Shown here piece by piece: positions 1,942-22,556 of a stretch of 64,000 nucleotides of DNA. The number at the start of each line of letters is the position of its first letter. Position 1 is the first letter of the stretch. Below the pieces are notes generated by a model. The model saw only the letters and a list, made by a program, of their open reading frames with translations. It ran no database searches and was not told the origin of the DNA. The stretch lies in IMG/VR virus record IMGVR_UViG_3300025012_000027, positions 1-64,000 of that record; one strand, written 5' to 3'. A program made the translations under genes and the position numbers.

Positions 1942-2435
1942 TACACCCACTCGTTAAAATAATCACGGTCGATGGGTTCTTCACCCACGAGCAGGCGAAT
2001 TCGCTAGTCGCGTCAACATACAACCTCGAGTATGTCTCAACCGAGTTTGGAAAAGAAATACCAAACTTTAATCTGATATCACCTAACTTCAATGAATCTG
2101 CTTCGGCGATGTTGAATACATCGATAGAAGTTGATGAATCTAGGTCCGGGTTCTTTAGGCTGCCTGAGAATTTTATACATTTCGAAGGATTCGATAGCAC
2201 AGATGAATGGGTGTTTGCTGTAGCTCTGCAACAATCTACGTTCAACGTATTCGAGCATAAATCTGGAGCAACTACGGCTTTGCACGGACATAAATATAAC
2301 TATCGAGACCTGTTCCAGTGGGATTTAAAAATTAACTATGTGTTAGATCCTGGGCAAGGCGTACTGTTCAGACCGTGGTTATTTCATTCGTTCGATACTG
2401 GACTGATCCAAACATTTAGGGTAACTGAACGATGA
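1938..2435 (+). CDS. 2OG-Fe(II) oxygenase-like / DUF6445-like protein
   Basis: IITVDGFF start, IHFE, GVLFRPWLFHS motifs; ATG 1938 overlaps upstream TGA (ATGA). Confidence 0.5.
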   Translation: MIHPLVKIITVDGFFTHEQANSLVASTYNLEYVSTEFGKEIPNFNLISPNFNESASAMLNTSIEVDESRSGFFRLPENFIHFEGFDSTDEWVFAVALQQSTFNVFEHKSGATTALHGHKYNYRDLFQWDLKINYVLDPGQGVLFRPWLFHSFDTGLIQTFRVTER

Positions 2436-3604
2436 CAATTAATTTTAGAACAACGATTCAAGATCCCACCGGGGCTGGTAGTGATTTAGGAGATCTTTTC
2501 ATTCCTAGATCACTGTTTAGTGATGCTGGATTATGGACGTGGGGCCGTAATAGCTATGGTCAGTTAGGTGATAGCACTGGTGCTAGTAAAAGCTCTCCAG
2601 TACAAACTATCGCCGGTGGTACGAACTGGAAGCTGGTTGCTGGTGGTCGATATCACACAGCCGCCATAAAAACCGATGGTACTTTATGGTCGTGGGGTCG
2701 TAATACCTATGGCGAACTAGGTGATAACACCATCGCCCATAAAAGCTCTCCAGTACAAACTATCGCTGGAGGAACTAACTGGAAACTGGTGGCTAGCGGG
2801 TGGTTGCACACAGCCGCAATTAAAACCGATGGTACTTTATGGACATGGGGATATAATTACTATGGTACACTCGGTGATAACACTATTGCTAATAAAAGCT
2901 CACCAGTACAAACTATCGCTGGAGGAACGAACTGGAAACTGGTAGCTGGTGGCCGATATCACACAGCCGCAATTAAAACCGATGGTACTTTATGGCTGTG
3001 GGGTCGCAATAACTATGGTCAACTAGGTGATAACACTCGCGTCAGTAAAAGCTCTCCTGTACAAACTATAGATGATGAAGGAACCAACTGGAAATCTGTT
3101 TCAGGCGGGACCGCCCACACAGCCGCAATTAAAACCGATGGTACTTTGTGGCTGTGGGGTACTAATTATTATGGTACACTCGGTGATGAAACTATCATCG
3201 ATAAAAGCTCTCCTATACAAACTGTCGCCGGTGGCACGAACTGGAAACTGGTAGCTAGTGGTGATTATTATACTGCTGCCATTAAAACTGACGGTACTTT
3301 ATGGACATGGGGTCGCAATAACTATGGCTCTCTCGGTGACAACACTATTGCTCATAAAAGTTCTCCAATACAAACTATCGCTGGAGGAACGAACTGGAAG
3401 CAGGTTGAATGTGGAACAGATTACATAGCCGCCATTAAAACTGATGGTACTTTATGGACGTGGGGGGCTAATTTCTATGGTATGCTAGGTGATAACACTG
3501 ACATCAGTAAAAGTTCTCCCGTACAAACTATCGCTGGTGGAACGAACTGGAAGTTGATTGGTGGTGGCATGATGCATACTGTAGCCATAAGAGACGATTC
3601 ATAG
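2432..3604 (+). CDS. Second RCC1-repeat beta-propeller protein
   Basis: Seven repeats of the same 51-aa unit as 733..1941. Confidence 0.85.
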   Translation: MTINFRTTIQDPTGAGSDLGDLFIPRSLFSDAGLWTWGRNSYGQLGDSTGASKSSPVQTIAGGTNWKLVAGGRYHTAAIKTDGTLWSWGRNTYGELGDNTIAHKSSPVQTIAGGTNWKLVASGWLHTAAIKTDGTLWTWGYNYYGTLGDNTIANKSSPVQTIAGGTNWKLVAGGRYHTAAIKTDGTLWLWGRNNYGQLGDNTRVSKSSPVQTIDDEGTNWKSVSGGTAHTAAIKTDGTLWLWGTNYYGTLGDETIIDKSSPIQTVAGGTNWKLVASGDYYTAAIKTDGTLWTWGRNNYGSLGDNTIAHKSSPIQTIAGGTNWKQVECGTDYIAAIKTDGTLWTWGANFYGMLGDNTDISKSSPVQTIAGGTNWKLIGGGMMHTVAIRDDS

Positions 3605-7108: not shown

Positions 7109-7203
7109 GCTTAAATAGTATGAGTAACTAATTGGATACCTTATGCGACTAACTCTAGAAGAAACACAATACCTGTTAGATGAATCTACTCAACATCTAA
7201 CCG
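7109..7203 (+). repeat. Copy 1 of late-promoter + 5'-gene repeat
   Basis: 92/95 nt identical to 15353-15447; contains TAAATA 7112-7117 and ATG 7143. Confidence 0.95.
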
Positions 7204-7244
7204 CGCGAGTTGCGGCAATCGATCCAGAAGGAGGTATACTGTGA
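7143..7244 (+). CDS. 33-aa chimeric mini-ORF (N-terminus of gene 15387 fused to unrelated tail); possibly a pseudogene/leader peptide
   Basis: MRLTLEETQYLLDESTQHLTARVAAIDPEGGIL*; its TGA overlaps the GTG start of 7241. Confidence 0.45.
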   Translation: MRLTLEETQYLLDESTQHLTARVAAIDPEGGIL

Positions 7245-7781: not shown

Positions 7782-7864
7782 CTTAAATAGTAAGAGTAAC
7801 TAATTGGGATACCTCATGCAACTAACTCTAGAAGACACGCGACAGCTAACCGAGGAACTGCTGC
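7782..7864 (+). repeat. Copy 2 (diverged, 24-nt in-frame deletion) of late-promoter + 5'-gene repeat
   Basis: cttaaatagtaagagtaactaattgggatacctcatgcaactaactctagaaga...gctaaccgaggaactgctgc aligns to 15354 onward. Confidence 0.9.
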
Positions 7865-7908
7865 GGGCGAAAACAACTTCTCGAATCGGTGCTCGATGTA
7901 TCAAGTAA
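7816..7908 (+). CDS. 30-aa mini-ORF derived from the N-terminus of gene 15387
   Basis: MQLTLEDTRQLTEELLRAKTTSRIGARCIK*. Confidence 0.4.
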   Translation: MQLTLEDTRQLTEELLRAKTTSRIGARCIK

Positions 7909-7922
7909 ATTTGGAGTAAAAT

Positions 7923-8552
7923 ATGAATATTGACTTTACCTATGCAATAACAAGCGTCAATCACGCAACAAAAACTATGATGGTATCGTATTCTGCCACC
8001 AATTACCCAACGGTATCCAAAGAGGTGCGCATACCATGGCGTGAAGAAGATCTCGATATCGTATTGCGAGAGTATGCTCCGTACGGCGTGTGGTGGGCAT
8101 ATAATAAGCCAACTAAAGATATTGTTGTAGGTACTAAAGGATTGATCAACTCTCAAAATAAGCCTGCTGTAAAGGTAATTCCACAAACTGATGTAAACAC
8201 CGTTAAAGCAGAGCAAATATCTAAAATTGCGCAATCTAGATATCTGTATGAGACGAGTGGTATAAATATAAACGGCACTCGATTCAAAACGGATCGCGAA
8301 TCGCAGGCAGCTATCACATCAGCATTTATCAGTCTATCGCAGGGATTATTGACTACGGTAGATTGGAAAACTGAACCTTCTGTATGGATTACGTTAGATT
8401 TGCAGAAAATTACTGATGTCTACAATGCAGTTATGACTAAAGTGCAATTGGGGCATACTACAGAAAAAGAATTGGTCACATCTATCAATAACGTCGATGC
8501 CAAATTAGACAACGCTATCAAACTCATTGAGGATATCGTATGGCCTCAATGA
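7923..8552 (+). CDS. DUF4376-domain tail-fibre-associated protein
   Basis: IAQSRYLYETSGININGTRFKTDRESQAAI..VDWKT..IVWP. Confidence 0.75.
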   Translation: MNIDFTYAITSVNHATKTMMVSYSATNYPTVSKEVRIPWREEDLDIVLREYAPYGVWWAYNKPTKDIVVGTKGLINSQNKPAVKVIPQTDVNTVKAEQISKIAQSRYLYETSGININGTRFKTDRESQAAITSAFISLSQGLLTTVDWKTEPSVWITLDLQKITDVYNAVMTKVQLGHTTEKELVTSINNVDAKLDNAIKLIEDIVWPQ

Positions 8553-9448
8553 GTTTGTATGTGCCTTTGCCGGATCAAGAAGTCGGCATTCTATCATATA
8601 AGCCAATATTGGATGAGTTAGACATCACAATTACGTCCATTAAAAATACATCGGCTTATGCTTTTCCTGTATCAAACAGAGGAACTAGCTACTGTGGGGA
8701 TCATCCTAAATACATGTCACTTGAGAGTCTAAATACTCTGACATATAAGAGTGAGCTACATAAAACAGGCATACTTACCATTCCGACAGAAATTGTTCAA
8801 GAAATTGGAGATACTTCTTTATATTTTTTCAAGCCAAATTCTATATTTAGCAACGAACTTGTAAGACGCCCAAGGGTTGCGAGCCCTATCGCCCAGTATG
8901 AAGTGACGTTTTCTGTAAATGAATTCAATGAGATCTATGTGTTTAATACATCGAGACACATATTTAATAATGCAGATACGTCTGGGGCTTGTGTACAGAC
9001 ATCTGAAAATAGTGTAGAATCCATCTATATGATAGATCAAGTGAGACAAGCTGTTATTAGATTAAACGTTCGTGGTGGCATACATAATGTGCAGTTTATA
9101 TATTATAATAACGAATTAGTTTTAATAGACTGGAATGCTAGACCACCAACAGTTCTTACCGAAGGTTTCGCAGCATATAACCATCCTAATATCATTAGTA
9201 CGGTAAGACACGCACTCGGACTCCCAATTCTGCCAAGAGAACCTATGTCTGTTATTTTTAGAGATTATTCGGATAATCCTATACCCGTTTCAAAACGGGA
9301 TCTTATCGTTAGTTTTGGACTACTTCCTAGAAAAGTTTGGGGTAAAGGGATTGATTATCCATTCATACGAGTCAGTGGGCTTGGATCTTCGGATGAAGAG
9401 CTGAATTCGAGATTTGATCAAATGGAACTGGCAGTATTTAGTAATTAA
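8540..9448 (+). CDS. ATP-grasp-fold protein (divergent)
   Basis: FFKP, YEVTF, GIHNVQFIYYNNELVLIDWNARP resemble ATP-grasp motifs. Confidence 0.6.
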   Translation: MASMSLYVPLPDQEVGILSYKPILDELDITITSIKNTSAYAFPVSNRGTSYCGDHPKYMSLESLNTLTYKSELHKTGILTIPTEIVQEIGDTSLYFFKPNSIFSNELVRRPRVASPIAQYEVTFSVNEFNEIYVFNTSRHIFNNADTSGACVQTSENSVESIYMIDQVRQAVIRLNVRGGIHNVQFIYYNNELVLIDWNARPPTVLTEGFAAYNHPNIISTVRHALGLPILPREPMSVIFRDYSDNPIPVSKRDLIVSFGLLPRKVWGKGIDYPFIRVSGLGSSDEELNSRFDQMELAVFSN

Positions 9449-9450
9449 CT

Positions 9451-10527
9451 ATGTTTTATTATTTTGATGATGGTACAAAATGTACATCGAAGATAGAAGC
9501 TATAAAATATGGTTTGGCGAAACAATTAACTCCGAAGTTTTATTATTACGATCACATCTATGAAAAATTAAATTGGAGTGTCGAACCATCTCAAAGTTTA
9601 GATTACTATTATAAAGAACAAGCTCAAAATATTAGAGATAATTATGATTATGTAATTTTAGCATATTCTGGTGGGTATGACTCAACCAATATACTTGAAA
9701 CCTTTCATTTCAATAATATAAAATTAGATAAGATATTGATCGTCGGCGCATTTAAACAAGATAGCTCATATGGAGTCGATGAAAACCATAATGGAGAATT
9801 GTATCATAACGCATTTCCATATGTAAAGGATCTTGGCTTGGACCATATCACTCAAGTTATAGACTATACAGAGTTATTCGATAGCACAAAAAACTTTAGT
9901 ATTTCAGTATATAACGAGAATTGGGTTGATACCATTGGAGCGTGGTTCAGTCCTCATAATTGGTTCTGGAAAGATGTAGAGAGGCACATTGTTCCACTAG
10001 AGTGGAGAGGTAAACGAGTCGCTCTAGTATTTGGTAAAGATAAACCCGGACTGTATCACAATGTTCATGCAACCCGTCGCGGTATAGGAATTCAAGGCGA
10101 TGCCCTTAATCCAACGGGATTTCATTTTAGAGACACGCCGTGTTTAAGTTACGCAGATACTAATGCAGATGAAAGTATTGACAGAGTAAACTTTTACTGG
10201 GATCCTGAAAACCCACAAATTTTATTAAAACAATTGCATGTGATTAAGAGAGTAACTGAAATAAATGAAATTGCTCCGCTCAAGTTACTAAATATAAATG
10301 AAATTGTGTACAGTCTCAAACGACCTTTGTTATTTAAGTCACCGAAGAGCGGTAGTAACTTATTTAGTCTTAGAGATGAATACTTAAAGACCAATAAGGC
10401 ATCTGATGTATTTTCTTTATATGCCGCTGGAATTAATAAGATAGACCGAGAAATAGGGGTAAGTAATATTGGTCCTATATTTTCCAAACATTATAGCATG
10501 CTAAGTGGCTTGCACGCGATAACGTAG
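9451..10527 (+). CDS. PP-loop (adenine nucleotide alpha-hydrolase-like) protein
   Basis: VILAYSGGYDSTNIL PP-loop. Confidence 0.65.
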   Translation: MFYYFDDGTKCTSKIEAIKYGLAKQLTPKFYYYDHIYEKLNWSVEPSQSLDYYYKEQAQNIRDNYDYVILAYSGGYDSTNILETFHFNNIKLDKILIVGAFKQDSSYGVDENHNGELYHNAFPYVKDLGLDHITQVIDYTELFDSTKNFSISVYNENWVDTIGAWFSPHNWFWKDVERHIVPLEWRGKRVALVFGKDKPGLYHNVHATRRGIGIQGDALNPTGFHFRDTPCLSYADTNADESIDRVNFYWDPENPQILLKQLHVIKRVTEINEIAPLKLLNINEIVYSLKRPLLFKSPKSGSNLFSLRDEYLKTNKASDVFSLYAAGINKIDREIGVSNIGPIFSKHYSMLSGLHAIT

Positions 10528-10537
10528 AAAGAATGAT

Positions 10538-11527
10538 ATGACAATAAAAACTTCCGGGTCTCTTTCATTAAATGAAATCAATTCTGAATTTGGGAGAGGG
10601 TATAACTTAAACGCATATAGAGGCACTTCCTATTGGAATAGTAACGCTACTCTGGGTACGTTTTCAAGCGTAGCTATTTCAATCAATGATTTTTTTGGTA
10701 AGGCTCTATCTCGACCACCCATCACCGCTCAAGTATTGGTTGTGGGTGGTGGTGGAGGCGGCGGTTCTGGAACACATGATTCTGTTGGCGGTGGAGGGGG
10801 CGGTGGAGGGGGCGGTCAATTCTTATCATTTGATGTAACATTATACCCCGGTGCTCCAGCTTCAATTAGTATAGGGGGTGGTGGTGCCGGTGGATACTAT
10901 TACATCTACTATACCGGCCCTTATGGTGACCAAGCTAATTATGCGTATGTAGCAGGGAATACTGGTGGATCCAGTTCTGCAGTATTCAATGGATCTACAT
11001 ACACTGCGGTAGGGGGGCTATATGGTCACCAAAGATGGTATAATGGTGAAAGCTTTACTGTTGACCCAACCCCATATGTTGGTGGGGCAGGTGGTTCGGG
11101 TAATGGCGGGGGTGGGTATGCATCTGCAGGTGGATCAGACGGTATTAGAGCAGGCGGGGGTGGTGGTGGTATAGATGATCAATCGACAGCTGGAGTAGGC
11201 GGAGCGGGTCCGCTGTGGTTTAATGGGTCTAGATATTCGGGTGGTGGTGGTGGTGGTGCTGATGGGTCCGGTCAAGCTTCGGGTGGCGCAGGTGGCGGCG
11301 GAACTGGCGGGTCATCTATGAATGGAACGGCAGGCGCAGCCAATACCGGTGGTGGCGGAGGTGGTGGTGGGTCATCGGGTTTTGTAACCAATGCAGGGGC
11401 CGGTGGCTCAGGCATAGTGATCATTAGATATGTTAGCAGTTTCGCATTCTTCAGTGGTGGGTCAGCGTATTCATCTGGTGGCTACATATACCATGTGTTT
11501 ACGTCTAATGCGTCATTTACAACATAA
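10538..11527 (+). CDS. Glycine-rich tail-fibre adhesin (gp38-like architecture)
   Basis: N-terminal SGSLSLNEINSEFG..ISINDFFGK anchor; many poly-Gly runs; GSGIVIIRY..YHVFTS end. Confidence 0.7.
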   Translation: MTIKTSGSLSLNEINSEFGRGYNLNAYRGTSYWNSNATLGTFSSVAISINDFFGKALSRPPITAQVLVVGGGGGGGSGTHDSVGGGGGGGGGGQFLSFDVTLYPGAPASISIGGGGAGGYYYIYYTGPYGDQANYAYVAGNTGGSSSAVFNGSTYTAVGGLYGHQRWYNGESFTVDPTPYVGGAGGSGNGGGGYASAGGSDGIRAGGGGGGIDDQSTAGVGGAGPLWFNGSRYSGGGGGGADGSGQASGGAGGGGTGGSSMNGTAGAANTGGGGGGGGSSGFVTNAGAGGSGIVIIRYVSSFAFFSGGSAYSSGGYIYHVFTSNASFTT

Positions 11528-12345
11528 TGAATTCATATAATAATTGGATCACGTCTAATGTATCTCAACGATTGACTAATCCCTTAGCCAAATTAAAGTT
11601 AGACATGAAAGTTCCTCTATTCGAGCAAAGGAACTTTCATGAATGTGCATCTGAAGCCGCGCAGCTTATTGCAAAAACTCATGATAATATATATGTGGCA
11701 TTAAGTGGAGGTATGGATTCTGAGTATATTGTTAGAACTTTTCATAAAAACAACGTACCGTTCACCCCAATCATATTAGAATGTGGGAATGAGATAGAGA
11801 GAAGGTACGCTTTTAAAGTATGCGAAGAATTGCGGCTATCTCCTGTCGTTCTACACTTATCAGAAGAAGATATGGTAGATAAATTCTATGAGTCAATCCA
11901 CAAAAAACTTAATGGGGTGGGTTATCATGCTACATTGGTTCTAGCTATCGCAGAGTATGTATACAGTAAACGAGGGGTGTTAGTAACGGGGGATGGATTT
12001 TTTGGAGATGGTGATGAATTGGTTACCGATACTGAGTTTGCTTTATACAATGAATGGGATGATTATATAGACTCTTTAGTTGATATAGATAACATTGGGT
12101 TCTTTCTATATACCCCACAATTGTTATATTCGATGTTTCCTAAAACGTATACTGCATGGAATATTATCAAAACAGAGTTGTATGGTATTGAATATAGGCG
12201 CAAGATGCGCCCTAGGTACAGGGACGACACACTAAATAAACTGCACAGTATAAATTCTAAGGTGATTTATACTTTAGGGAATAATATTTGTAATGTTATT
12301 TATACGAAACAAGAAATTTTAGAAATTTTTAATACGAAGGAATGA
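11527..12345 (+). CDS. Second PP-loop (asparagine-synthase-like C domain) protein
   Basis: IYVALSGGMDSEYIV; LVTGDG. Confidence 0.65.
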   Translation: MNSYNNWITSNVSQRLTNPLAKLKLDMKVPLFEQRNFHECASEAAQLIAKTHDNIYVALSGGMDSEYIVRTFHKNNVPFTPIILECGNEIERRYAFKVCEELRLSPVVLHLSEEDMVDKFYESIHKKLNGVGYHATLVLAIAEYVYSKRGVLVTGDGFFGDGDELVTDTEFALYNEWDDYIDSLVDIDNIGFFLYTPQLLYSMFPKTYTAWNIIKTELYGIEYRRKMRPRYRDDTLNKLHSINSKVIYTLGNNICNVIYTKQEILEIFNTKE

Positions 12346-12352
12346 AATTATT

Positions 12353-13084
12353 ATGAAAAAACTTATAGCACTTGCATTATTGGCTATTTCAATTACATGC
12401 TCAGCTGCACCAATTGAGTTTGTTGTAACGGCATCTGCAGGGGGGCCTAATGATACCGTGACTAGAAAAATAGTAGAAAAAATCTCTACTGAAACTGATT
12501 TGACATTTGTTGTGGTGAATAAGCCGGGTGCTGCACATGTAATTGGCTATAACTTTACAATGAATAGTAAAAAACCCACATTAATTTTATCTACCCCTGA
12601 AATTGCGAATCATGACGTGTATTTACAATTAGATGAACTTTTCACAGTAGGGTATTTTACTAACACTATTTTTGTTTCAACAAAGTCAAATATCACAAAC
12701 ATTAATCAATTAGCTGAATTATCCAAACATAGAGACGTGAATTTTGGGAGTGGTGGTCCGGGAACGTATAGTCATAAAGCAATGGAAATTGTGTGTAAGT
12801 CAACTTTAAAATGTCTATCAGTACCATACAAATCTGGAGCAGAGGGTATGTTAGCCGTAATGACTGGGCAAATAGATACATACGCACTAGTATCATATGG
12901 TTCTTATCAATTTTTGAATAATGATAAGGTTAAAGCGATACATGAAATACAAATGCTGAAAAATGATAATTGGTTAAAGCTATTTGCTAAAAATGTATCT
13001 AATGAAGATAGAGAAAAGATTATGCGAGTGCTAAATTCTCTGAATAAAGAATTCTTCTACGAAATGGGATTTGAAAAACAATAG
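12353..13084 (+). CDS. tctC: Tripartite tricarboxylate transporter substrate-binding protein (TctC/Bug family), compact
   Basis: Signal peptide; PIEFVVTASAGGPND, VVNKPGA, FGSGGPG, VPYKSGAEG..AVMTGQID. Confidence 0.85.
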   Translation: MKKLIALALLAISITCSAAPIEFVVTASAGGPNDTVTRKIVEKISTETDLTFVVVNKPGAAHVIGYNFTMNSKKPTLILSTPEIANHDVYLQLDELFTVGYFTNTIFVSTKSNITNINQLAELSKHRDVNFGSGGPGTYSHKAMEIVCKSTLKCLSVPYKSGAEGMLAVMTGQIDTYALVSYGSYQFLNNDKVKAIHEIQMLKNDNWLKLFAKNVSNEDREKIMRVLNSLNKEFFYEMGFEKQ

Positions 13085-13125
13085 TGCTGCGGTGAGTAAT
13101 ATCCAGTAACATATAACTCTAAATA

Positions 13126-14409
13126 ATGACTTTTGCTATATTATTAGGCCTACTTGCAGGCATTTTTAGTGGTATTATACCTGCCGTAGGAAACTTTACT
13201 ACTATTATACTGTTCATACCATTATTAACTAAATTTAATGTGTATGAGTTGGTGTTGTTTTATATGACACTAACGGCGATAAGTCAATACGTCTGTAGCA
13301 TACCCGCTATATTGTTTGGTATACCTGGAGAAACCAGTAGTATTCCGGTCGTCCAAGAATCCAAAAATCTATCCTGGTCTGAAAAGGTCGAGGCCCTCGT
13401 AGGATGCGCATACGGTAGTTTTATAGGTACTGTGAGTGTGTTCGTATGCATTTACGTATTCTCGAGTCATATAGAGCGCATCGTGCAACCGATGTTCACC
13501 TCGTATATCCTAGCCAGTATGCTATGCGTGTCTTTAATAGCCATCTGCTTGGTGTCTAACAAATCTGCGTGGTTCAGTGTGTTCAATGCTATGTTAGGCG
13601 CAGGTCTTGCGCTGATTGGCATAAACACGTTTTTCAACATCCATTTTACGTTTGGTTTTAGCCTCTTCTCTGGAGGAATCCCAGATATCTTAGTCATCAC
13701 CTTTCTGCTAGGATTTCCGGAACTATATCAAAACGCTAAAATACAAGCGGTCAATCTTCAATTGACCCAAATCGATCACAGACCGTTTACAGCCATAGTT
13801 TTGCCTAAGTGGTATGTTAGTTTGAGTGCGACAGTGGTGGGGGCGCTCGGTGGTATTGTGCCCGGTCTTACCTTCATTGCTAGCAGCAGTATCGCACATA
13901 CTGTTTCAAAGTGGGCGAACGTGCCTGCGTTGCAGAGAATATTTGCTAGCGAATCTGCTAACAATGCTGGGTCTGTAACACAGCTATTACCGTTATTATT
14001 GTTTGCTATCCCGATATCAGGGGGTGAGGCACTTATTCTTATGATGTTGAACCAACAGGCATTCAGCGTGTCGACATATAGTTTCTCATCCATATACGAT
14101 TATGTTGGATACAATTTTCTCATTGTAAATATGTTGGGGTTAGCGATAACATTAGCATTATCGTATGCAGCGTCAAAAGTTACTCGCATCAATGTGCGTC
14201 ATATCGTCACTTTTGCGATGATTGTTATGGTGTCGTCTATTATGTATGAGAGTTTTAGTAAAGGGGTGTTTTTAAATTATGTTTTGATATCTGTATTCTT
14301 ATTACCTTTAGGGTGGGTATTACGCAACCGGAATAATATGCCGTTAGTGTTTTCTTTTTTAGTTTTTGATCGGCTCACAGAAGCTGTATATCGTGTTTTT
14401 ATTTTATGA
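13126..14409 (+). CDS. tctA: Tripartite tricarboxylate transporter large permease (TctA family)
   Basis: Polytopic membrane protein; GIIPAVG, PAILFGIPGETSS, GIVPGL, ASESANNAG, PLLLFAIP signatures. Confidence 0.85.
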   Translation: MTFAILLGLLAGIFSGIIPAVGNFTTIILFIPLLTKFNVYELVLFYMTLTAISQYVCSIPAILFGIPGETSSIPVVQESKNLSWSEKVEALVGCAYGSFIGTVSVFVCIYVFSSHIERIVQPMFTSYILASMLCVSLIAICLVSNKSAWFSVFNAMLGAGLALIGINTFFNIHFTFGFSLFSGGIPDILVITFLLGFPELYQNAKIQAVNLQLTQIDHRPFTAIVLPKWYVSLSATVVGALGGIVPGLTFIASSSIAHTVSKWANVPALQRIFASESANNAGSVTQLLPLLLFAIPISGGEALILMMLNQQAFSVSTYSFSSIYDYVGYNFLIVNMLGLAITLALSYAASKVTRINVRHIVTFAMIVMVSSIMYESFSKGVFLNYVLISVFLLPLGWVLRNRNNMPLVFSFLVFDRLTEAVYRVFIL

Positions 14410-15305
14410 GGACTCTTATGTTTTTAAAATTTATCGTTTCATGCGTTGTATTGTTTAGCAGCGCTTTCGCGTCTGCAGATTCTCTCAAATTAGTATCGCC
14501 GGGATCACAATCGGGCGGCTATATGATTCAACTAGCTGCATATGCTAAAGATCTGTCAAAGGACTATACGATTTCGGCGGTAGCGGCTGGTAATCTGTGT
14601 GAAGCTCTCAAACAAGTATCGGAAAATACTCCGACGCTGTTGCTATGGGGCAATGACTATGAAGCTGAGTATCGTCGAAATATCTGCGGTAATGTTCCGA
14701 ATAATCTAAACTTACGGGATATGATTAGGTTTAATACGAACTCATATATGGTTTGCTCGATTACTCACAAGAAGCCCGAGTTTCTAACAAAGACGGTCAC
14801 TGGTAGAATTGCTCATAGCGTTCCTCGCGACATGTTTACGGCAACTATCAATGAGATCAATGCGACCTTTGGGACTAGTTATGCAGCAATCCCATATAAC
14901 GGCACTGGATTGGCTAGATTAGCATTGGTTAGTGGTGAAGTAGATTATGCAATTCTCCCTAACGAGCATCGTCCATATATTGAACAAAAGGGCGGCGATT
15001 GTTTCTATGTGTTAGGCGATACCGGATCAAACTATCCGACGATCGAAGACTTGCAAAAGTTGGCCCCGACGAAAAAACTAACTCTATCGCTGAACCACGG
15101 ATTGTTTCTGTTGCATGCATCAAAGGCTGAACGAGAAAAAATTGTTACTACGCTGAAGGGGTTGCACGCTGACTGCAACAGCGGAATTGGCATGCATACA
15201 AAATGTGGTAAAGACTTTTTCCCTGTTTGGAATATTACTCCAACATTGGCATCGGCGTGGGAAGCTGAGGTGCTCTCATTTGGAAAGTTTTTAGCCAGTA
15301 AGTAA
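14406..15305 (+). CDS. Second, divergent TctC-like periplasmic binding protein
   Basis: Signal peptide; LVSPGSQSGG; IPYNGTGLARLALVSGEVDY. Confidence 0.6.
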   Translation: MRTLMFLKFIVSCVVLFSSAFASADSLKLVSPGSQSGGYMIQLAAYAKDLSKDYTISAVAAGNLCEALKQVSENTPTLLLWGNDYEAEYRRNICGNVPNNLNLRDMIRFNTNSYMVCSITHKKPEFLTKTVTGRIAHSVPRDMFTATINEINATFGTSYAAIPYNGTGLARLALVSGEVDYAILPNEHRPYIEQKGGDCFYVLGDTGSNYPTIEDLQKLAPTKKLTLSLNHGLFLLHASKAEREKIVTTLKGLHADCNSGIGMHTKCGKDFFPVWNITPTLASAWEAEVLSFGKFLASK

Positions 15306-15352: not shown

Positions 15353-15447
15353 GCTTAAATAGTATGAGTAACTAATTGGATACCTTATGCAACTAACTCT
15401 AGAAGAAACACAATACCTGTTAGATGAATCTACTCAACCGCTAACCG
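15353..15447 (+). repeat. Copy 3 (intact source) of late-promoter + 5'-gene repeat
   Basis: TAAATA 15356-15361 followed by start of the 749-aa ORF. Confidence 0.95.
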
Positions 15448-17636
15448 AGGAACTGCTGCAGGTATTGGTTGAAAATCGTATCGAGTACATAAAATCTGCA
15501 ATGGCGGACAAGCTGTCAACTGCACACGATCCAGAATCTAGCAATTTGTCTGCTGGTAAGATCATAGATCACATCGCAAAGAAAGTTGACCCAACTACTC
15601 GCAAGACTCAAACTGAATGGCTCGTTAATCGATACCATGCAGGCGAGTTTAAATTAGGCGATTCCAAGGCAATCAAGAAGACTATGTCTACGTATGAGGA
15701 AGCCGTCCCTCATATGGAAAACAAAGACATCAAGTCGTTCAAATCACTAGGAGATCTTCGAGACGCCGTTGCAACGACCCACGTCAAGCGTAAGATGGTA
15801 GATGCATCGGATAATCAGCCCGTCGAGACCGGCGAAACGAAACTGTATGATCAGGATGGTGTTCAGGGGTTCAAGTTAACTAACAAGAAAACGAGTATCC
15901 ACAATTACGGCCCTAATGGCAAAGTTGCAAAGACTAGTTGGTGCACTGCATCTGAAGGGGCCAACAATCAGTTTGCTGGATATGCTGGTGGGAAATACCC
16001 TATGAGATTCCCTAATGGTGAAGTATTGCAAATCCACCATCAATCTGCTCAACTGCAGGATGTCAATAACAGACCGGTTTCGATGGCCGATCCTAGATTT
16101 GCGCCATACAAAGAACACATTGAGAATTTCATCAAGCAAACGGCAGACTCAGAGAATCTTGCATCGCCGAGCGAATTGGTGAAGCGACACGTGCCAACAT
16201 CATCGGATGAACTACAACCGTTGATCGATAAGCATACTGCGTTGATGGCACCCGTCCACGCAAAAACATATGTACCTTATGGTCATTCGCGTCATGTGCG
16301 CGAAGCAATGAACGACATTAAGGATGTAATTCAAAGATCTCGTATTACCGATCCTCAATTTGAACATCTTAAGAATGTGTCTACGCTGGATGGGTGGAAT
16401 GATACCCCCGAGCCAGCACGTCTATCGAATTGGTTAGCTAACAGCCCACACTTACAGCCGCATCAGGTAACTAGCCTCGTTGATGATTTAGTTAACAGAC
16501 CATCGGACGCTGACGACGAGAACTTCAAACCCATATTAGTTCACCCAAACATTTCCGACCATGACATACATAAATTGATTGGATGGAGTGGCGCAACAGA
16601 TAAAGCACACACATCTGCTCGTAGATCTTTTCTATTGAACACACCAAGCATCAAAGAAGAGCATTTGGACCGAATCAACCCGTCCATTGACGAACGGGAA
16701 GCGATGATTGATAGGTCTATGGCCAAAAGCATCCCAGATGATTATTTCAGAGACGTGATGCATAAGACCCCACACGTCGTTGCAGAAAACCCAATCACAC
16801 CCGCCCACGTTCTGCGCGAATTGCATGATACGAAAGCCGCCACTCCAGCATTGCATACGAGCTTGCTGAAAAACCCAAATTTACCAAAAGACGTGTTCAT
16901 GAAAGCGGTGACCGCGGATCTAGTTCATCCAGTTGATACAAATATACGAGTGGCAGTTGAACGCCCAGATCTAGAACCATCGGAAAGATCTATGGTCGTT
17001 AAGCGTCATATGGATGGTAAGTTGAATGATACGGGATTTGGAAGCTTTGCAGCATCTAATCGTCTATCAAGAGATGATATACACACAATAATAAACCACC
17101 CTGATTTGGATATTCGTCGAATGCAATCCGTCATTAGCAATCCGAAAATTCGGCACGGTGAATTAGAACGTATAGTGAATCACCCTAAATTCTCATCTGA
17201 TGTCATAAGTGATGTGATCGAGTCTCCATACATTAGATCTTCTACGGTAGATGCGCTAACTAGCTTGCCTGAGCATAATCGTGAAGTGCTTGATCAGATA
17301 TCTAAGACGCATTCAACAGCTATTGAGGGGCGTCACTTGACGCAGGTGTTGAGTCATCCGACGACAAATTTTGCGACTAAAGTGGCAGCACTTAAACATC
17401 CAGCAAACACTCCTGAACATTTTCATATGTTGAAAGACAATCCTAGATTTCATGGAGCTATAAGCAACAGTGTTAACGCACCTCCATCTATATTGCATGG
17501 GTTGTCCTCATCTCCAGCCGATCACGTCAGACTGAACGTTGCGAATAACCCAAACACCGAACCATCGACCCTGAATATTTTGTCGACTGATTCGGTCCCA
17601 GAAATTGCAGCAGTAGCAAAGAAGAAACTGAAATGA
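15387..17636 (+). CDS. Large protein with WCT motif and C-terminal HEAT/LRV-like helical repeats; possible internal head protein
   Basis: TSWCTA motif; repeated AxNPxxPxxxL units (VAENPITPAHVL, VRLNVANNPNTEPSTL); late promoter. Confidence 0.55.
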   Translation: MQLTLEETQYLLDESTQPLTEELLQVLVENRIEYIKSAMADKLSTAHDPESSNLSAGKIIDHIAKKVDPTTRKTQTEWLVNRYHAGEFKLGDSKAIKKTMSTYEEAVPHMENKDIKSFKSLGDLRDAVATTHVKRKMVDASDNQPVETGETKLYDQDGVQGFKLTNKKTSIHNYGPNGKVAKTSWCTASEGANNQFAGYAGGKYPMRFPNGEVLQIHHQSAQLQDVNNRPVSMADPRFAPYKEHIENFIKQTADSENLASPSELVKRHVPTSSDELQPLIDKHTALMAPVHAKTYVPYGHSRHVREAMNDIKDVIQRSRITDPQFEHLKNVSTLDGWNDTPEPARLSNWLANSPHLQPHQVTSLVDDLVNRPSDADDENFKPILVHPNISDHDIHKLIGWSGATDKAHTSARRSFLLNTPSIKEEHLDRINPSIDEREAMIDRSMAKSIPDDYFRDVMHKTPHVVAENPITPAHVLRELHDTKAATPALHTSLLKNPNLPKDVFMKAVTADLVHPVDTNIRVAVERPDLEPSERSMVVKRHMDGKLNDTGFGSFAASNRLSRDDIHTIINHPDLDIRRMQSVISNPKIRHGELERIVNHPKFSSDVISDVIESPYIRSSTVDALTSLPEHNREVLDQISKTHSTAIEGRHLTQVLSHPTTNFATKVAALKHPANTPEHFHMLKDNPRFHGAISNSVNAPPSILHGLSSSPADHVRLNVANNPNTEPSTLNILSTDSVPEIAAVAKKKLK

Positions 17637-19168: not shown

Positions 19169-19196
19169 TTGACACTGTGCGATACAGTGTTATAAT
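19169..19196 (+). promoter_or_regulatory. Sigma70-type early promoter with palindromic spacer, preceded by late TAAATA (19162-19167)
   Basis: TTGACA-N16-TATAAT with extended -10 TG; acactgt/acagtgt inverted repeat 19172-19190. Confidence 0.8.
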
Positions 19197-20586: not shown

Positions 20587-20614
20587 TTGACTTTTAATTT
20601 TTATCTGTTATAAT
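20587..20614 (+). promoter_or_regulatory. Sigma70-type early promoter
   Basis: TTGACT-N16-TATAAT with extended -10 (TGtTATAAT). Confidence 0.8.
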
Positions 20615-20918: not shown

Positions 20919-20931
20919 TTGACGATCAAAG

Positions 20932-20954
20932 ACCCCCTTAACCGGGGGTTGTTA
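20932..20954 (+). terminator. Probable intrinsic terminator/attenuator hairpin
   Basis: accccc-ttaacc-gggggt followed by a weak T-rich tail. Confidence 0.5.
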
Positions 20955-20966
20955 ACTGGAGCGCTA

Positions 20967-22556
20967 ATGGATTGTATCGAATGTTGGTCAACAAACACCA
21001 ATAAACGCGGATTTACTGAAACATCCCAAGGTCTCAAACAACGCTACAAATGCACTGAATGTGGCAAACACTTTTCAATCTTAGCAGAATCAGTACCTGC
21101 TACCGAAGATGACATAATCATATATGACGATGATGACTTAGATTCATCCAGCAAATATGTTCGAAGCGATGAATGGCTGACACATAACGTTTATAGCAAG
21201 CGCACAATTGTCATTACCGCCGTCCAGAATAACACCGAGCTTGAAGAAGATTTTCTGCAATGTTTAAACACATTTGTGCAAGACCGCGACGCACGTCTCA
21301 TTGCTATCCCGATAAAGTACAAGACAATCAATGCTAGCGATGATTTGTTCGCGGATTTATATGATCAACGAATGGAACCATTTTTGGTCGAAAACACGTT
21401 GGCGTGGCCTGAATATGGTCTCAAAGTATATGCCGGTTTGAAGATTCAAGCAACAGCCGAGAATCCACTCAGTGGATTGGATCCATTGAGCAAGGGGTCG
21501 TCGATCATTATCGGACATGCCCAAGTACAGCTCAAGACACTACCAAATCTACACAATCATATCAGCAGTATCATTACGTCGACCGGTGTGTTGACGCAAA
21601 AGAACTACAGCAATACAAAGATTGGCGAAAAGGCTAGGTTCAACCATAGTCTCTCAGCCATTGTAGTTGAATTTGATACTAATCATTATCACCTCAGGCA
21701 TCTAAACTACGATCCCGTATCTAAAGCATTCTGTGATTTGGATAAGCAATATTCCAGCGATGGTACTATTAGGATGGTAGAAATTGAAGCTATTGTGACG
21801 GGCGATGAACATACAATCTTTAAAGATGAGAATGTCGAACAAATGACCTATCTCAATGAAGATAGCGTGATCAATGTTCTGCGACCAAAGTATATCGTTC
21901 GAGGTGATGTTCTAGATTCTTATTCGATCAGTCATCATCATCGGAAGAATGTCTTTACTCAGTATGCTAAGTGGCAGTCTGGGATGAACTCTATCGAGGC
22001 CGAACTAGAAGGTGTTATTGAGTACATCAACAAAACTACTCCTGAGTTTGCCACGAGTATCATTGTCCAGAGTAATCACAATGAGCACTTGCTCAGATGG
22101 TTAAACGACGTTGATATTAAGGTTGAGCCTTGGAACGCTAAGATTTACCATTACTTGATGTATCGAATGCTAAAAGATACCTCGATGGGCGAAACCGGTA
22201 CCGTGACCCCAAATCCACTTGAATTGATGTGTGAGGGTAGATTCAATGATAATATATCGTTTATTGATCGAAGTGGAATGTCAATCCTCGATATTGAAGT
22301 TGGGCAGCACGGCGACTATGGGGTGAATGGTGCTCGCGGTTCGGCGAAATCGTTTGCCAGAATGCCTGAGAAAATGATTGTCGGTCACTCACACTCACCG
22401 TCGATTGAAAAGGGCGCGTATGTTGTTGGCACTAGCTCTAAGCTCAGACTAGAGTATAACAAAGGTGCATCTACTTGGCATCACGCTCACTGTATCATTC
22501 ATAAGAACGGTAAACGTCAACTATTGTTTATTACTCCTGATGGATGGCGACTGTGA
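20967..22556 (+). CDS. T5 A1-like metallophosphoesterase with N-terminal zinc ribbon
   Basis: GDEH, GDVLD, SNHNEH, HGDYGVNGARGS, GHSHSP motifs; CxxC..QRYKCxxCGK N-terminus. Confidence 0.7.
   Translation: MDCIECWSTNTNKRGFTETSQGLKQRYKCTECGKHFSILAESVPATEDDIIIYDDDDLDSSSKYVRSDEWLTHNVYSKRTIVITAVQNNTELEEDFLQCLNTFVQDRDARLIAIPIKYKTINASDDLFADLYDQRMEPFLVENTLAWPEYGLKVYAGLKIQATAENPLSGLDPLSKGSSIIIGHAQVQLKTLPNLHNHISSIITSTGVLTQKNYSNTKIGEKARFNHSLSAIVVEFDTNHYHLRHLNYDPVSKAFCDLDKQYSSDGTIRMVEIEAIVTGDEHTIFKDENVEQMTYLNEDSVINVLRPKYIVRGDVLDSYSISHHHRKNVFTQYAKWQSGMNSIEAELEGVIEYINKTTPEFATSIIVQSNHNEHLLRWLNDVDIKVEPWNAKIYHYLMYRMLKDTSMGETGTVTPNPLELMCEGRFNDNISFIDRSGMSILDIEVGQHGDYGVNGARGSAKSFARMPEKMIVGHSHSPSIEKGAYVVGTSSKLRLEYNKGASTWHHAHCIIHKNGKRQLLFITPDGWRL

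Follow-up and report, generated by a model that had tools for sequence, protein, structure and literature searches.

The window analysed here is a stretch of 64,000 nucleotides from the genome of a groundwater phage (216,115 bp, GC content 42%), and all features described below lie on its plus strand. In a preliminary description, made from the sequence alone, it had been proposed to carry a phage-encoded tripartite tricarboxylate transporter (TTT) consisting of TctC, TctA and a second, divergent TctC-like protein (TctC'), without TctB. This set was confirmed by HMM, profile and structure tests, and all three open reading frames were found: a compact TctC-type periplasmic binding protein of 243 aa with a putative signal peptide (12353..13084; Pfam TctC and phmmer), a short TctA permease of 427 aa with about 11 membrane helices (13126..14409; Pfam TctA and AF2 model) and the TctC-family binding protein TctC' of 299 aa, also with a putative signal peptide (14406..15305; family profile). 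The start of TctC' overlaps the stop codon of TctA (ATGA), and an alternative start, the ATG at 14418, would result in a protein of 295 aa.

The transporter genes are tightly packed in one block with an ATP-grasp gene and two PP-loop genes. A tail-fibre-type protein (DUF4376, 7923..8552; Pfam PF14301, E 2e-15; PHROG 10508 tail fiber protein, E 2e-21) is followed by an ATP-grasp fold enzyme of the carboxylate-amine ligase type with 302 aa (8540..9448; ESM Atlas structure matches), a PP-loop ATP pyrophosphatase of 358 aa (9451..10527; SGGxDS motif, AF2 model and generic PP-loop fold matches), a glycine-rich protein (Gly_rich_2) that is probably part of a fibre or adhesin (10538..11527; Pfam PF21722, E 1e-14) and a second, shorter PP-loop enzyme of 272 aa with the motif SGGMDS (11527..12345; blastp, hhalign and hmmsearch). 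Downstream of the block lies a helical-repeat protein of 749 aa whose role is unknown (15387..17636).

The block is bracketed by a 95-nt direct repeat, of which copy 1 (7109..7203) and copy 3 (15353..15447) are 97% identical over 95 nt; a partial copy 2 (7782..7867) was detected by repeat comparison and motif search. Copy 3 forms the leader and the true 5' end of the gene for the 749-aa protein. Copy 1 contains a 26-nt motif, an ATG and codons for MRLTLEETQYLLDEST and opens an ORF of only 33 aa (7143-7244), and copy 2 opens an ORF of 31 aa (7816-7908) upstream of the DUF4376 gene; the first approximately 25 residues of the 749-aa protein are common to both short ORFs. The 26-nt motif occurs three times in the whole genome, compared to zero expected occurrences. 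The block has a slightly reduced GC content, namely 0.365-0.369 in the segments 8-10 kb and 12-14 kb, compared to approximately 0.42-0.43 elsewhere. A scan for promoters and terminators between 7 and 21 kb yielded no more sites than were found in shuffled sequences and none inside the cassette, and none of the RNA runs that were searched contained the locus.

Components of the transporter

The first binding protein (TctC) matched Pfam PF03401 with an E-value of 6e-9 and 36.2 bits (cut-off 27) over profile positions 1-174 of 274, and phmmer matched it to the solved TTT binding proteins 4x9t, 7ndr, BugD and TBP with E-values from 9e-10 to 4e-7. Both canonical Gly-rich ligand loops are kept. The protein is indeed short, as had been remarked before; its small size results from internal loop deletions in comparison to a 302-aa relative in viral locus L072, and a truncation was ruled out, since the alignment reaches the end of this relative with internal gaps. 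The N-termini of TctC and TctC', as read from their residues, are basic, then hydrophobic and then continue into an AxA-like stretch.

The permease TctA matched Pfam PF01970 with an E-value of 7e-39 and 134 bits (cut-off 28.9) over profile positions 2-412 of 423, and a search of the genome yielded 133.8 bits. The ESANNA motif is present, with E276, N279 and N280 kept, as are GIPGE, G68 and both of the G-Hy3-G-Hy3-G-Hy2-P-G-Hy-G motifs that were defined for TctA in a preprint (10.64898/2026.07.27.740893), here represented by G8/G12/G16/P19/G22 and G239/G243/P246/G247. The transport-motif residues are invariant or nearly so among 65 viral TctAs. Membership of the transporter family and intactness of the motifs are thereby shown, and the earlier claim of clear TctC/Bug motifs beside a TctA with ESANNA held, with both Pfam matches above their cut-offs. 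The viral TctA is about 75 aa shorter than the canonical TctA of about 500 aa and 12 helices, and does not reach this number of helices; when aligned with 12 canonical TctAs, it was found to lack ~16 aa at the N-terminus as well as the last helix (residues 459-499 in a TctA of 501 aa). The AF2 model (pLDDT 90, pTM 0.90) fitted a bacterial TctA with a TM-score of 0.85 over residues 22-456 of 502. Its best matches among solved structures were the elevator carriers DASS, INDY, AbgT, ArsB and TRAP with middling Z-scores of 5.2-7.9, and Foldseek searches returned no meaningful match in the PDB and none in BFVD.

No match to TctB (PF07331) was obtained in the whole phage genome, even at E-values up to 1, so that the absence of TctB is shown and the statement that no small-permease gene is visible held; nor was a conserved small multi-helix ORF found near TctA in 78 viral loci. 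[quoted passage not shown] Function of this TctA without TctB is plausible and may be considered possible, but it is unproven.

As a single sequence, TctC' gave no Pfam hit (PF03401 remained below threshold with 14.8 bits) and only noise in the PDB. A profile of 48 viral TctC' homologues, in contrast, matched 7ndr, BugE, BugD and Bug27 over nearly the whole length with E-values from 3e-11 to 8e-9; the description as a second, divergent TctC-like protein held, but only by means of this family profile. Pfam TctC was reached at E<0.01 by 8 of the 48 family members, and signal-peptide-like N-termini were seen in 41 of them, although only by a crude hydropathy test. Four cysteine columns are conserved in the family, and the second canonical Gly-rich ligand loop has been lost, which is why the ligand of TctC' is possibly not a simple carboxylate. 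The predicted complex of TctA and TctC', which was built on our own alignments, had an ipSAE of 0.59 (0.57-0.61) versus 0.00 in three controls, with at least 82% of the contacts agreeing between runs and a partner pLDDT of at least 79. This was rated as weak support; in calibration, the ipSAE mark was reached by 58 of 80 solved complexes and by 2 of 110 mismatched pairs.

Viral clade and gene neighbourhood

Scanning viral contigs with a single protein gave nothing, and matches were obtained only with a profile of nine homologues. This search revealed a clade of short TctAs (~430 aa, 11 helices) on 78 IMG/VR viral contigs, and the module is widespread among viral contigs from groundwater, freshwater and marine habitats. 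The clade comprises more than 150 protein clusters, 71 of them at E<=1e-30, and the best 150 cluster matches have lengths of 403-470 aa, except for two shorter fragments. The canonical 500-aa TctAs are split from it by a branch with a support of 99, so that the phylogeny suggested in the preliminary description does place the viral TctA in a clade of its own; its nearest Atlas clusters are 77-94% viral. When 185,579 species genomes were searched with a six-sequence profile, there was a single match, namely a viral contig binned into a MAG that carries the viral cassette. No matches were found in 50,697 GenBank phages for the cassette (megablast) or for TctC' and the PP-loop protein (tblastn), and TctA had only two weak matches there, on unannotated faecal contigs. 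Neither TctA nor TctC' nor the PP-loop protein is represented by a family in PHROGs. The short TctA clade is virus-restricted and has been found so far only in uncultivated phages, and the transporter is not a recent host gene. The notion that a phage acquired a TTT of the host type has to be corrected accordingly: the permease belongs to a clade of short TctAs that is confined to viruses and has a binding-protein family of its own. The expansion of Bug proteins in Betaproteobacteria, which had also been mentioned, has no bearing here, and nothing ties this phage with 42% GC to Betaproteobacteria.

Linkage of the viral TctA with a binding protein and with a PP-loop enzyme is shown: within at most four genes of TctA, a TctC-like gene is located in 74 and a PP-loop gene in 40 of the 78 viral loci, while 38 loci, some of them on truncated contigs, have no PP-loop gene within this distance. 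Both the Gly-rich and the PP-loop neighbours (10538..11527 and 11527..12345) that had been reported at the present locus are real, and the PP-loop gene 9451..10527 and the ATP-grasp gene 8540..9448 are added to them. Only 7 of the 78 loci, however, have a Gly-rich gene close to TctA; the adhesin link is merely local, and a general one is ruled out. In some phages the pairs of TctA and binding protein are multiplied in tandem, and viral locus L087 has extra orphan binding proteins of the TRAP and TTT type. Elsewhere among the viral loci, the triad of TctA, TctC' and PP-loop enzyme is adjoined by genes for a DegT/EryC1 aminotransferase, a GDP-mannose 4,6-dehydratase/epimerase and a carbamoyltransferase as well as by radical SAM enzymes, a Rieske oxygenase and AspH-like cupins. 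An AspH-like cupin was also searched for in the genome of the window and was not found anywhere.

In the PP-loop enzyme 9451..10527 the residues S73-G74-G75-x-D77-S78 are invariant or nearly so across 47 homologues. Its AF2 model (pLDDT 81) matched AsnB, carbapenam synthetase, TtuA, NcsA, LarE and NadE with Foldseek probabilities of 0.9-1.0 and TM-scores of only 0.25-0.39, and Foldseek searches of PDB and Swiss-Prot yielded generic superfamily matches only. The nearest Atlas clusters are 100% viral, and the enzyme belongs to a virus-only family accompanying the viral TctA. No above-threshold match placed this family in the AsnB, QueC, NadE, TilS, TtuA or sugar amidotransferase subfamilies, Pfam and NCBIfam gave only stray matches among the 47 members, the best match of the family profile in the PDB was LarE with an E-value of 0.008, and no cysteines are conserved in the 47 sequences. 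The second PP-loop enzyme (11527..12345) is a paralogue of the first according to a blastp match, with a weak Pfam match to Asn_synthase, an hhalign probability of 94% to the PP-loop family and an hmmsearch E-value of 3e-8. For the ATP-grasp enzyme (8540..9448) no Pfam sequence match and only a faint NCBIfam match to the ATP-grasp part of CPSase were obtained; the Atlas model of the exact protein (pTM 0.81) matched clusters of PurK, LAL and ATP-grasp_3/4 with TM-scores of 0.72-0.77 over approximately 290 residues. Beyond the 40 loci with a PP-loop gene, a conserved gene of 388 aa is located 3' of TctA in a further 19 marine loci. It could be ATP-grasp-like, an assignment that rests only on the reading of two motifs; a PDB profile search with it was empty, and its hhalign comparison with the ATP-grasp enzyme 8540..9448 was not significant.

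Proposed function and rival explanations

The reading that we slightly favour, with a probability of roughly 0.55 and in the absence of ligand, transport or expression data, is that the block encodes a phage-native, two-component relative of the TTT systems that is independent of TctB, depends on binding proteins and feeds carboxylate-activating enzymes. During infection, TctC and TctC' would be exported to the host periplasm via their signal peptides, where each would capture a small ligand of the organic-acid type and dock on the 11-helix TctA. TctA would then move the ligand inwards by an elevator movement driven by an ion gradient. In the cytoplasm, the PP-loop enzymes, here together with the ATP-grasp enzyme, would use ATP to activate a carboxyl group and link this group to ammonia or an amine, resulting in a phage-specific product. 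The direction of transport, ion-driven carboxylate uptake, the ligand class, the coupling to ligases and late-gene timing are only inferred. The same applies to the action of the PP-loop enzyme on the imported acid, which rests on gene linkage alone because the enzyme fits no characterised subfamily. Substrate import for the neighbouring ligases, one of the roles proposed in the preliminary description, nevertheless gains real support from the conserved synteny with PP-loop genes.

A bolder version, to which we give rather less than even odds, regards the triad of TctA, TctC' and PP-loop enzyme as a self-contained, virus-restricted "import and ligate" pathway without TctB, which would provide an unusual acid for attachment by phage enzymes to a phage-specific product, e.g., a modification of the virion, the DNA or the envelope. 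The tandem multiplication would in that case represent diversification of ligand specificity under host-phage conflict, and, if this reading is true, phages would for the first time be shown to have a native lineage of secondary transporters that depend on binding proteins.

Nutrient scavenging and superinfection exclusion, which had been proposed alongside ligase supply, remain as rivals. General scavenging remains possible but is rather unlikely; the transporter would then act on its own, without a specific ligase link, as an auxiliary metabolic gene that increases the uptake of common di- or tricarboxylates or amino acids to gain energy or biomass during infection. The known import substrates of canonical TTT systems comprise citrate, C4-dicarboxylates, amino acids and aromatic acids (review PMC5812351), a tctA on viral contigs of SUP05 has already been classed among putative auxiliary metabolic genes (PMC4164917), the canonical carboxylate-binding loops are kept in TctC, and a nearby PP-loop gene is missing in 38 of the 78 loci. 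Under this explanation, however, a host-like transporter would be expected, whereas the clade is deeply separated and has its own binding-protein family; the recurrent linkage to PP-loop or ATP-grasp-like and sugar-modifying genes and the tandem pairs of TctA and binding protein point to specialised chemistry.

A role in glycan or sugar-acid chemistry is unlikely. Here a carboxylated sugar or amino-sugar precursor, e.g., nonulosonic-acid-like, would be moved for modification of the virion, the phage DNA or the host surface, and the PP-loop enzyme would be a sugar amidotransferase. Sugar-modifying and related enzymes do adjoin the triad in other viral loci, and the module often adjoins tail-fibre genes; secondary carriers that depend on a binding protein, such as TRAP SiaPQM, are classic transporters of sugars of the sialic-acid type. 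Against it, none of those sugar enzymes lies near the cassette in the genome of the window, which also lacks the AspH-like cupin, and the PP-loop family has no match to the N-acetyl sugar amidotransferase or other NCBIfam subfamily models.

Receptor interference or superinfection exclusion, in which the binding proteins or TctA would mask or displace a host envelope component on which competing phages rely or feed host signalling without any import, is considered very unlikely. The block lies in a tail-fibre/adhesin region here and in viral loci L013 and L033, receptor-blocking genes often adjoin receptor-binding genes, as known for llp of T5, and the paralogues are expanded, with orphan TRAP and TTT binding proteins in L087. 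Against this stand the near-invariance of the TctA transport motifs across the clade, the scarcity of Gly-rich adhesin genes near TctA and the nature of the other conserved partner, a cytoplasmic enzyme that would not be needed for purely periplasmic blocking.

Stand-alone 11-helix TctA-like proteins of archaea are required by Methanococcus for natural transformation and resemble the viral TctA in being short, with about 11 helices, and without TctB (PMC10133366), but a corresponding handling of nucleic acid instead of a small acid is all but excluded by a TM-score of the viral model of 0.85 to bacterial TctA versus 0.56 to archaeal MJ1079 and by the nearly constant pairing with a TctC-type binding protein, which is absent in archaea.

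An assembly artefact, a fusion of bacterial DNA with a phage contig or a non-functional, decaying remnant can likewise be practically dismissed: only the slightly lower GC content and the direct repeat bracketing the block speak for it, whereas the cassette occurs with an identical protein and the same gene order on eight contigs from different samples, of which four are larger than 200 kb, as well as in a sediment study conducted separately, is flanked on both sides by phage tail genes, has only intact ORFs with conserved catalytic and transport motifs, and belongs to a clade that is absent from the cellular genomes searched apart from the viral contig in the MAG. Because it is present on several independently assembled contigs of more than 200 kb between phage tail genes, the contig is not chimeric. 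The preliminary description would have been refuted by a lack of HMM or structural matches to TctA and TctC or by a chimera with host DNA; the matches exist, and the chimera is excluded.

Comparison with known systems

If the TctB-independent transporter favoured here is functional, TctA can work with a binding protein and without TctB, which bears on what TctB does. No TTT membrane component was among the solved structures in the structure searches with the TctA model, and the viral TctA represents a minimal 11-helix TTT for structural work. The virus-only PP-loop enzyme family with its hundreds of members points to an unknown phage metabolic pathway.

The bacterial TTT systems (TctABC of Salmonella, BctCBA of Bordetella; TCDB 2.A.80) have in common with the phage block a TctA permease with Gly/Pro clamshell motifs and the ESANNA hairpin, TctC/Bug-type binding proteins with signal peptides (putative in the phage proteins), adjacent co-oriented genes and a predicted elevator-type fold. 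They differ in that the phage genome has no TctB, the viral TctA is shorter and lacks the last helix, two binding proteins flank the phage permease, the clade is virus-restricted, and the conserved phage partner belongs to a divergent family not recognised by single-sequence Pfam searches. The archaeal TctA-like proteins (arCOG04469/COG1784; MMJJ_13030 of Methanococcus maripaludis) are also short, with about 11 helices, and work without TctB; they are, however, also without TctC, whereas the viral ones nearly always have it. TRAP transporters (SiaPQM, IseQM) are binding-protein-dependent systems for ion-driven secondary uptake, as is proposed for the phage block, and their membrane parts match the viral TctA model with Z-scores of 5.2-6.0, but they belong to a different family (DctP/DctQM).

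With regard to viruses, Roux et al. 2014 (PMC4164917) reported a tctA "domain hit" on viral contigs of SUP05 and counted it among the putative auxiliary metabolic genes, which was repeated in a review (PMC6359870). In that case as well, a gene with a TctA domain is found on contigs of uncultivated phages, and its role was given as unknown; this report consists of one line, without binding protein, TctB absence, enzyme partner, clade or distribution. Apart from this hit, to our knowledge no complete conserved set of permease and binding protein has been described as a viral lineage of its own. Phages carry single binding proteins or channels, and pstS of cyanophages is a precedent for a phage-encoded periplasmic binding protein. 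In that case only the binding protein is supplied, to a host ABC transporter, whereas the present phage also encodes the permease.

The transporter genes

The preliminary description had read three genes of the plus strand as a tripartite tricarboxylate transporter (TTT) set of the order TctC-TctA-TctC′ lacking the small membrane subunit TctB, and this identification was upheld by Pfam and profile matches and by a negative genome-wide search for TctB. The TctA gene (13126-14409, +) encodes a 427-aa permease, which carries the ESANNA motif and matches almost the full Pfam TctA profile with 134 bits (cut-off 28.9). The TctC gene (12353-13084, +; 243 aa) scores 36.2 bits against Pfam TctC (cut-off 27), and its product as a single sequence matches solved TTT binding proteins at E 9e-10. 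The product of TctC′ (14406-15305, +; 299 aa) as a single sequence gave no Pfam match and only noise against the PDB. Its reading as a second, divergent TctC-like protein was confirmed at the family level: 47 viral homologues were found, the homologue profile matched the TTT binding proteins 7ndr, BugE, BugD, Bug27 and the terephthalate-binding protein over nearly the full length (E 3e-11 to 1e-7), eight family members themselves reach Pfam TctC, and the TctC signature VPY..SG....L..GD.D is retained in the family. The first TctC retains the two canonical Gly-rich ligand loops, SAGGPNDT and GSGGPGTYSH, the second of which is missing from TctC′; the two proteins probably bind different ligands, for which no ligand data exist.

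TctB is absent from the entire 216-kb genome. Since a gap of only 41 nt on one side of TctA and an overlap of 4 nt on the other separate the genes, there is no space for TctB among the three. For TctC′, the start may be the ATG at 14406, overlapping the TctA stop (ATGA), or that at 14418 (295 aa) as in public gene calls. A TctA-TctC′ complex was predicted with an ipSAE of 0.59 versus 0.00 in three controls, rated as "weak support" by the tool.

The phage locus

The DNA originates from a groundwater metagenome, and the IMG/VR record of 216,115 bp, whose first 64 kb make up the window, was rated complete by CheckV. A chimera with host DNA, named in the preliminary description as a refutation, was checked and contradicted. 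The identical TctA protein and the same gene order were found on eight contigs from different samples, four of them longer than 200 kb. Public runs of two studies contain the stretch, among them one sediment metagenome with 75% of the sampled words, and the sediment run and a further groundwater sample yielded contigs that tile the cassette, each of them differing from it by one base at most. The cassette is preceded by tail-fibre-type genes (DUF4376, PHROG tail fiber) and followed by virion genes. A chimeric contig can thus be practically ruled out and the cassette regarded as genuine phage DNA.

From position 80 to about 45.9 kb every gene lies on the plus strand, including those for RCC1-repeat, T5 A1-like DNA transfer, virion structural, baseplate wedge and fibre-like proteins. 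At about 45.9 kb the gene orientation switches from plus to minus and the cumulative GC skew has its maximum, a place that is likely to be the boundary between transcription modules. The two proteins with RCC1 repeats (regulator of chromosome condensation-like; 733-1941 and 2432-3604; PHROG E 1e-49 and 2e-57) lie upstream of the tail region. The A1-like DNA transfer protein (20919-22556; PHROG 1745, E 6e-127) has homologues in more than 1,100 GenBank phages and is closest to proteins of Synechococcus, Stenotrophomonas and Xanthomonas phages (38-40% identity). Just 3′ of the cassette region, a perfect 12/12 sigma-70 consensus promoter with TG extension (19169-19196) overlaps a terminator-like hairpin (19170-19192), and an 11/12 sigma-70 promoter follows at 20587-20614. 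Within the cassette block, the sequence scan found promoter- and terminator-like sites to be no more numerous than expected by chance.

The block comprises, in this order, an ATP-grasp gene (8540-9448, +; ESM Atlas structure match, TM 0.72-0.77), PP-loop 1 (9451-10527), a gene for a Gly-rich protein (10538-11527), PP-loop 2 (11527-12345), TctC, TctA and TctC′. It is bracketed by a direct repeat of 95 nt (7109-7203 and 15353-15447, +; 97% identical), of which a third, partial copy (7782-7867, +) shares a 26-nt core that occurs in three copies and nowhere else in the genome, with 0 expected by chance. Each copy carries an ATG start and encodes M(R/Q)LTLEE. A long gene (749 aa) is opened by the copy at 15353-15447 alone; those at 7109-7203 and 7782-7867 open ORFs of 33 and 31 aa. 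The 8.2-kb transporter block is therefore flanked by a duplicated leader and 5′ gene end. The repeat could be the footprint of an insertion or duplication by recombination, or else a shared regulatory leader. Short-read assemblies end at the repeat copies.

Virus-restricted TctA and its partner genes

In a search of 5.8 billion proteins, the TctA of the window matched eight proteins of 417-457 aa (E 1e-86 to 1e-33), after which the matches jumped to canonical TctAs of about 500 aa at E 1e-17 or worse. Exhaustive phmmer against 1.84 billion cluster representatives yielded 71 matches with E<=1e-30; at E<=1e-10 the number rose to 324. Two shorter fragments aside, the top 150 were all 403-470 aa long. 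By profile scan of IMG/VR, 78 distinct viral loci were identified, many on contigs of 50-316 kb. A FastTree phylogeny comprised 65 viral and 51 canonical TctAs together with 36 short metagenomic ones, the cellular sequences being only those most similar to the query; a branch with support 99 separated the canonical TctAs from the viral and short metagenomic ones, which were intermixed. The closest ESM Atlas clusters were 77-94% "Viruses, Uroviricota". Among 185,579 prokaryotic species (one genome each), a short-type TctA occurred at a single locus (E 7e-65), the 9-kb contig NHCZ02000024.1 (L095) of an unclassified marine MAG ("MAG: bacterium TMED46"). Its gene order is TctA, binding protein, cupin, cupin, DegT and PP-loop, and because this viral cassette is 54-73% identical to IMG/VR contigs, the contig is a viral one binned into the MAG. 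Within the databases searched, the viral TctA is restricted to viruses. No counterpart of the clade was present in GenBank phages, PHROGs or BFVD, and in the papers searched the only literature trace was a one-line entry "tctA, protein domain hit only" in a list of putative auxiliary metabolic genes (AMGs) from SUP05 viruses, its role being stated as unknown (PMC4164917).

For the analysis of neighbours, ORFs were called in all loci and clustered by blastp, and the clusters were compared by hhalign. The TctC′ family consists of three sequence clusters (hhalign probability 99.7-99.8), joined by the first TctC of the window at 97.6. In 74 of the 78 loci TctA has a member of this family no more than four genes away, mostly as its direct neighbour; a PP-loop gene is found at this distance in 40. 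The PP-loop family has an invariant SGGxDS loop and no conserved cysteines; no fitting Pfam or NCBIfam subfamily was found, the AF2 model (pLDDT 81) matched only generic PP-loop folds, and the ESM Atlas neighbours were 100% viral clusters. In 19 other loci, a marine group, a conserved 388-aa gene follows TctA in place of PP-loop; its motifs might resemble ATP-grasp, an unconfirmed motif reading. The module is also often accompanied by AspH-like cupins, a DegT aminotransferase, a 4,6-dehydratase/epimerase, a carbamoyltransferase, radical SAM enzymes and a Rieske oxygenase. Elsewhere, the module is flanked by tail-fibre genes (loci L013 and L033) or an endolysin (L009).

The window genome has one module only and no cupins of the module-associated kind. 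Five loci (L067, L074, L076, L079 and L080) contain TctA-binding-protein pairs doubled or tripled in tandem within single phage genomes, beside up to four PP-loop paralogues. In loci L008, L013, L034, L067, L086, L095 and others, the module lies amid sugar-nucleotide-type enzymes, namely the DegT aminotransferase, 4,6-dehydratase/epimerase, carbamoyltransferase, radical SAM/SPASM enzymes, Rieske oxygenase and AspH-like cupins. On one phage-like contig (L087:6731-8753), the TctA/TctC′/PP-loop triad has beside it an additional binding protein of the TRAP type (DctP) and a Pfam-positive TctC without matching membrane parts.

Proposed function and alternatives

Compared with 12 canonical TctAs, the viral TctA is shorter at both ends, by ~16 residues at the N-terminus and by the last membrane helix at the C-terminus. 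Its confident AF2 model (pLDDT 90, pTM 0.90) superimposes on Agrobacterium vitis TctA with TM 0.85 over residues 22-456 of 502. No solved TTT permease was among the structure-search matches; the best VIA matches were the elevator carriers DASS, INDY, AbgT, ArsB and TRAP (Z 5.2-7.9, rated middling). In a modelling study of BctCBA, the elevator domain comprises residues 1-144 and 233-392, and the scaffold, against which BctB is placed, residues 145-231 and 393-507 (preprint 10.64898/2026.07.27.740893). Every elevator-domain motif is invariant or almost invariant in the viral TctAs, and the missing C-terminal helix falls within the scaffold span. A trimmed scaffold with intact elevator motifs is compatible with a TctB-free design but does not prove it.

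In the best-supported reading, which we hold to be somewhat more likely than not (probability about 0.55), the genes would encode an ion-driven, binding-protein-dependent importer functioning without TctB, and the imported ligand would be fed to phage enzymes activating carboxyl groups with ATP. Family membership, intact motifs, viral restriction, the absence of TctB and gene linkage are shown. The direction of import is inferred, all characterised carriers that depend on a binding protein serving as the analogy. The chemical class of the ligand, the coupling to the ligases and expression with the late genes are inferred too; no ligand, transport or expression data are available.

Plain nutrient scavenging, in which the ligand would merely be taken up, remains a possible alternative. 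A sugar-acid or glycan pathway is unlikely; in the window genome, none of the sugar-nucleotide-type enzymes seen beside the module at other loci lies near the cassette, be it DegT aminotransferase, 4,6-dehydratase/epimerase, carbamoyltransferase, radical SAM/SPASM enzyme, Rieske oxygenase or AspH-like cupin. Interference with a receptor is still less plausible. An artefact, contradicted by the independent contigs, and an archaeal-type nucleic-acid role, with the archaeal MJ1079 matching the TctA model at a TM of only 0.56, can both be virtually dismissed.

The gene set behind the favoured importer reading is a TTT-like system of two components that is native to viruses, with a binding-protein family of its own and a PP-loop partner seen only in viruses; its ligand and product have not been identified. 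TTT systems of the bacterial kind are known; what is new is the viral two-component form with its own binding-protein family and PP-loop partner.
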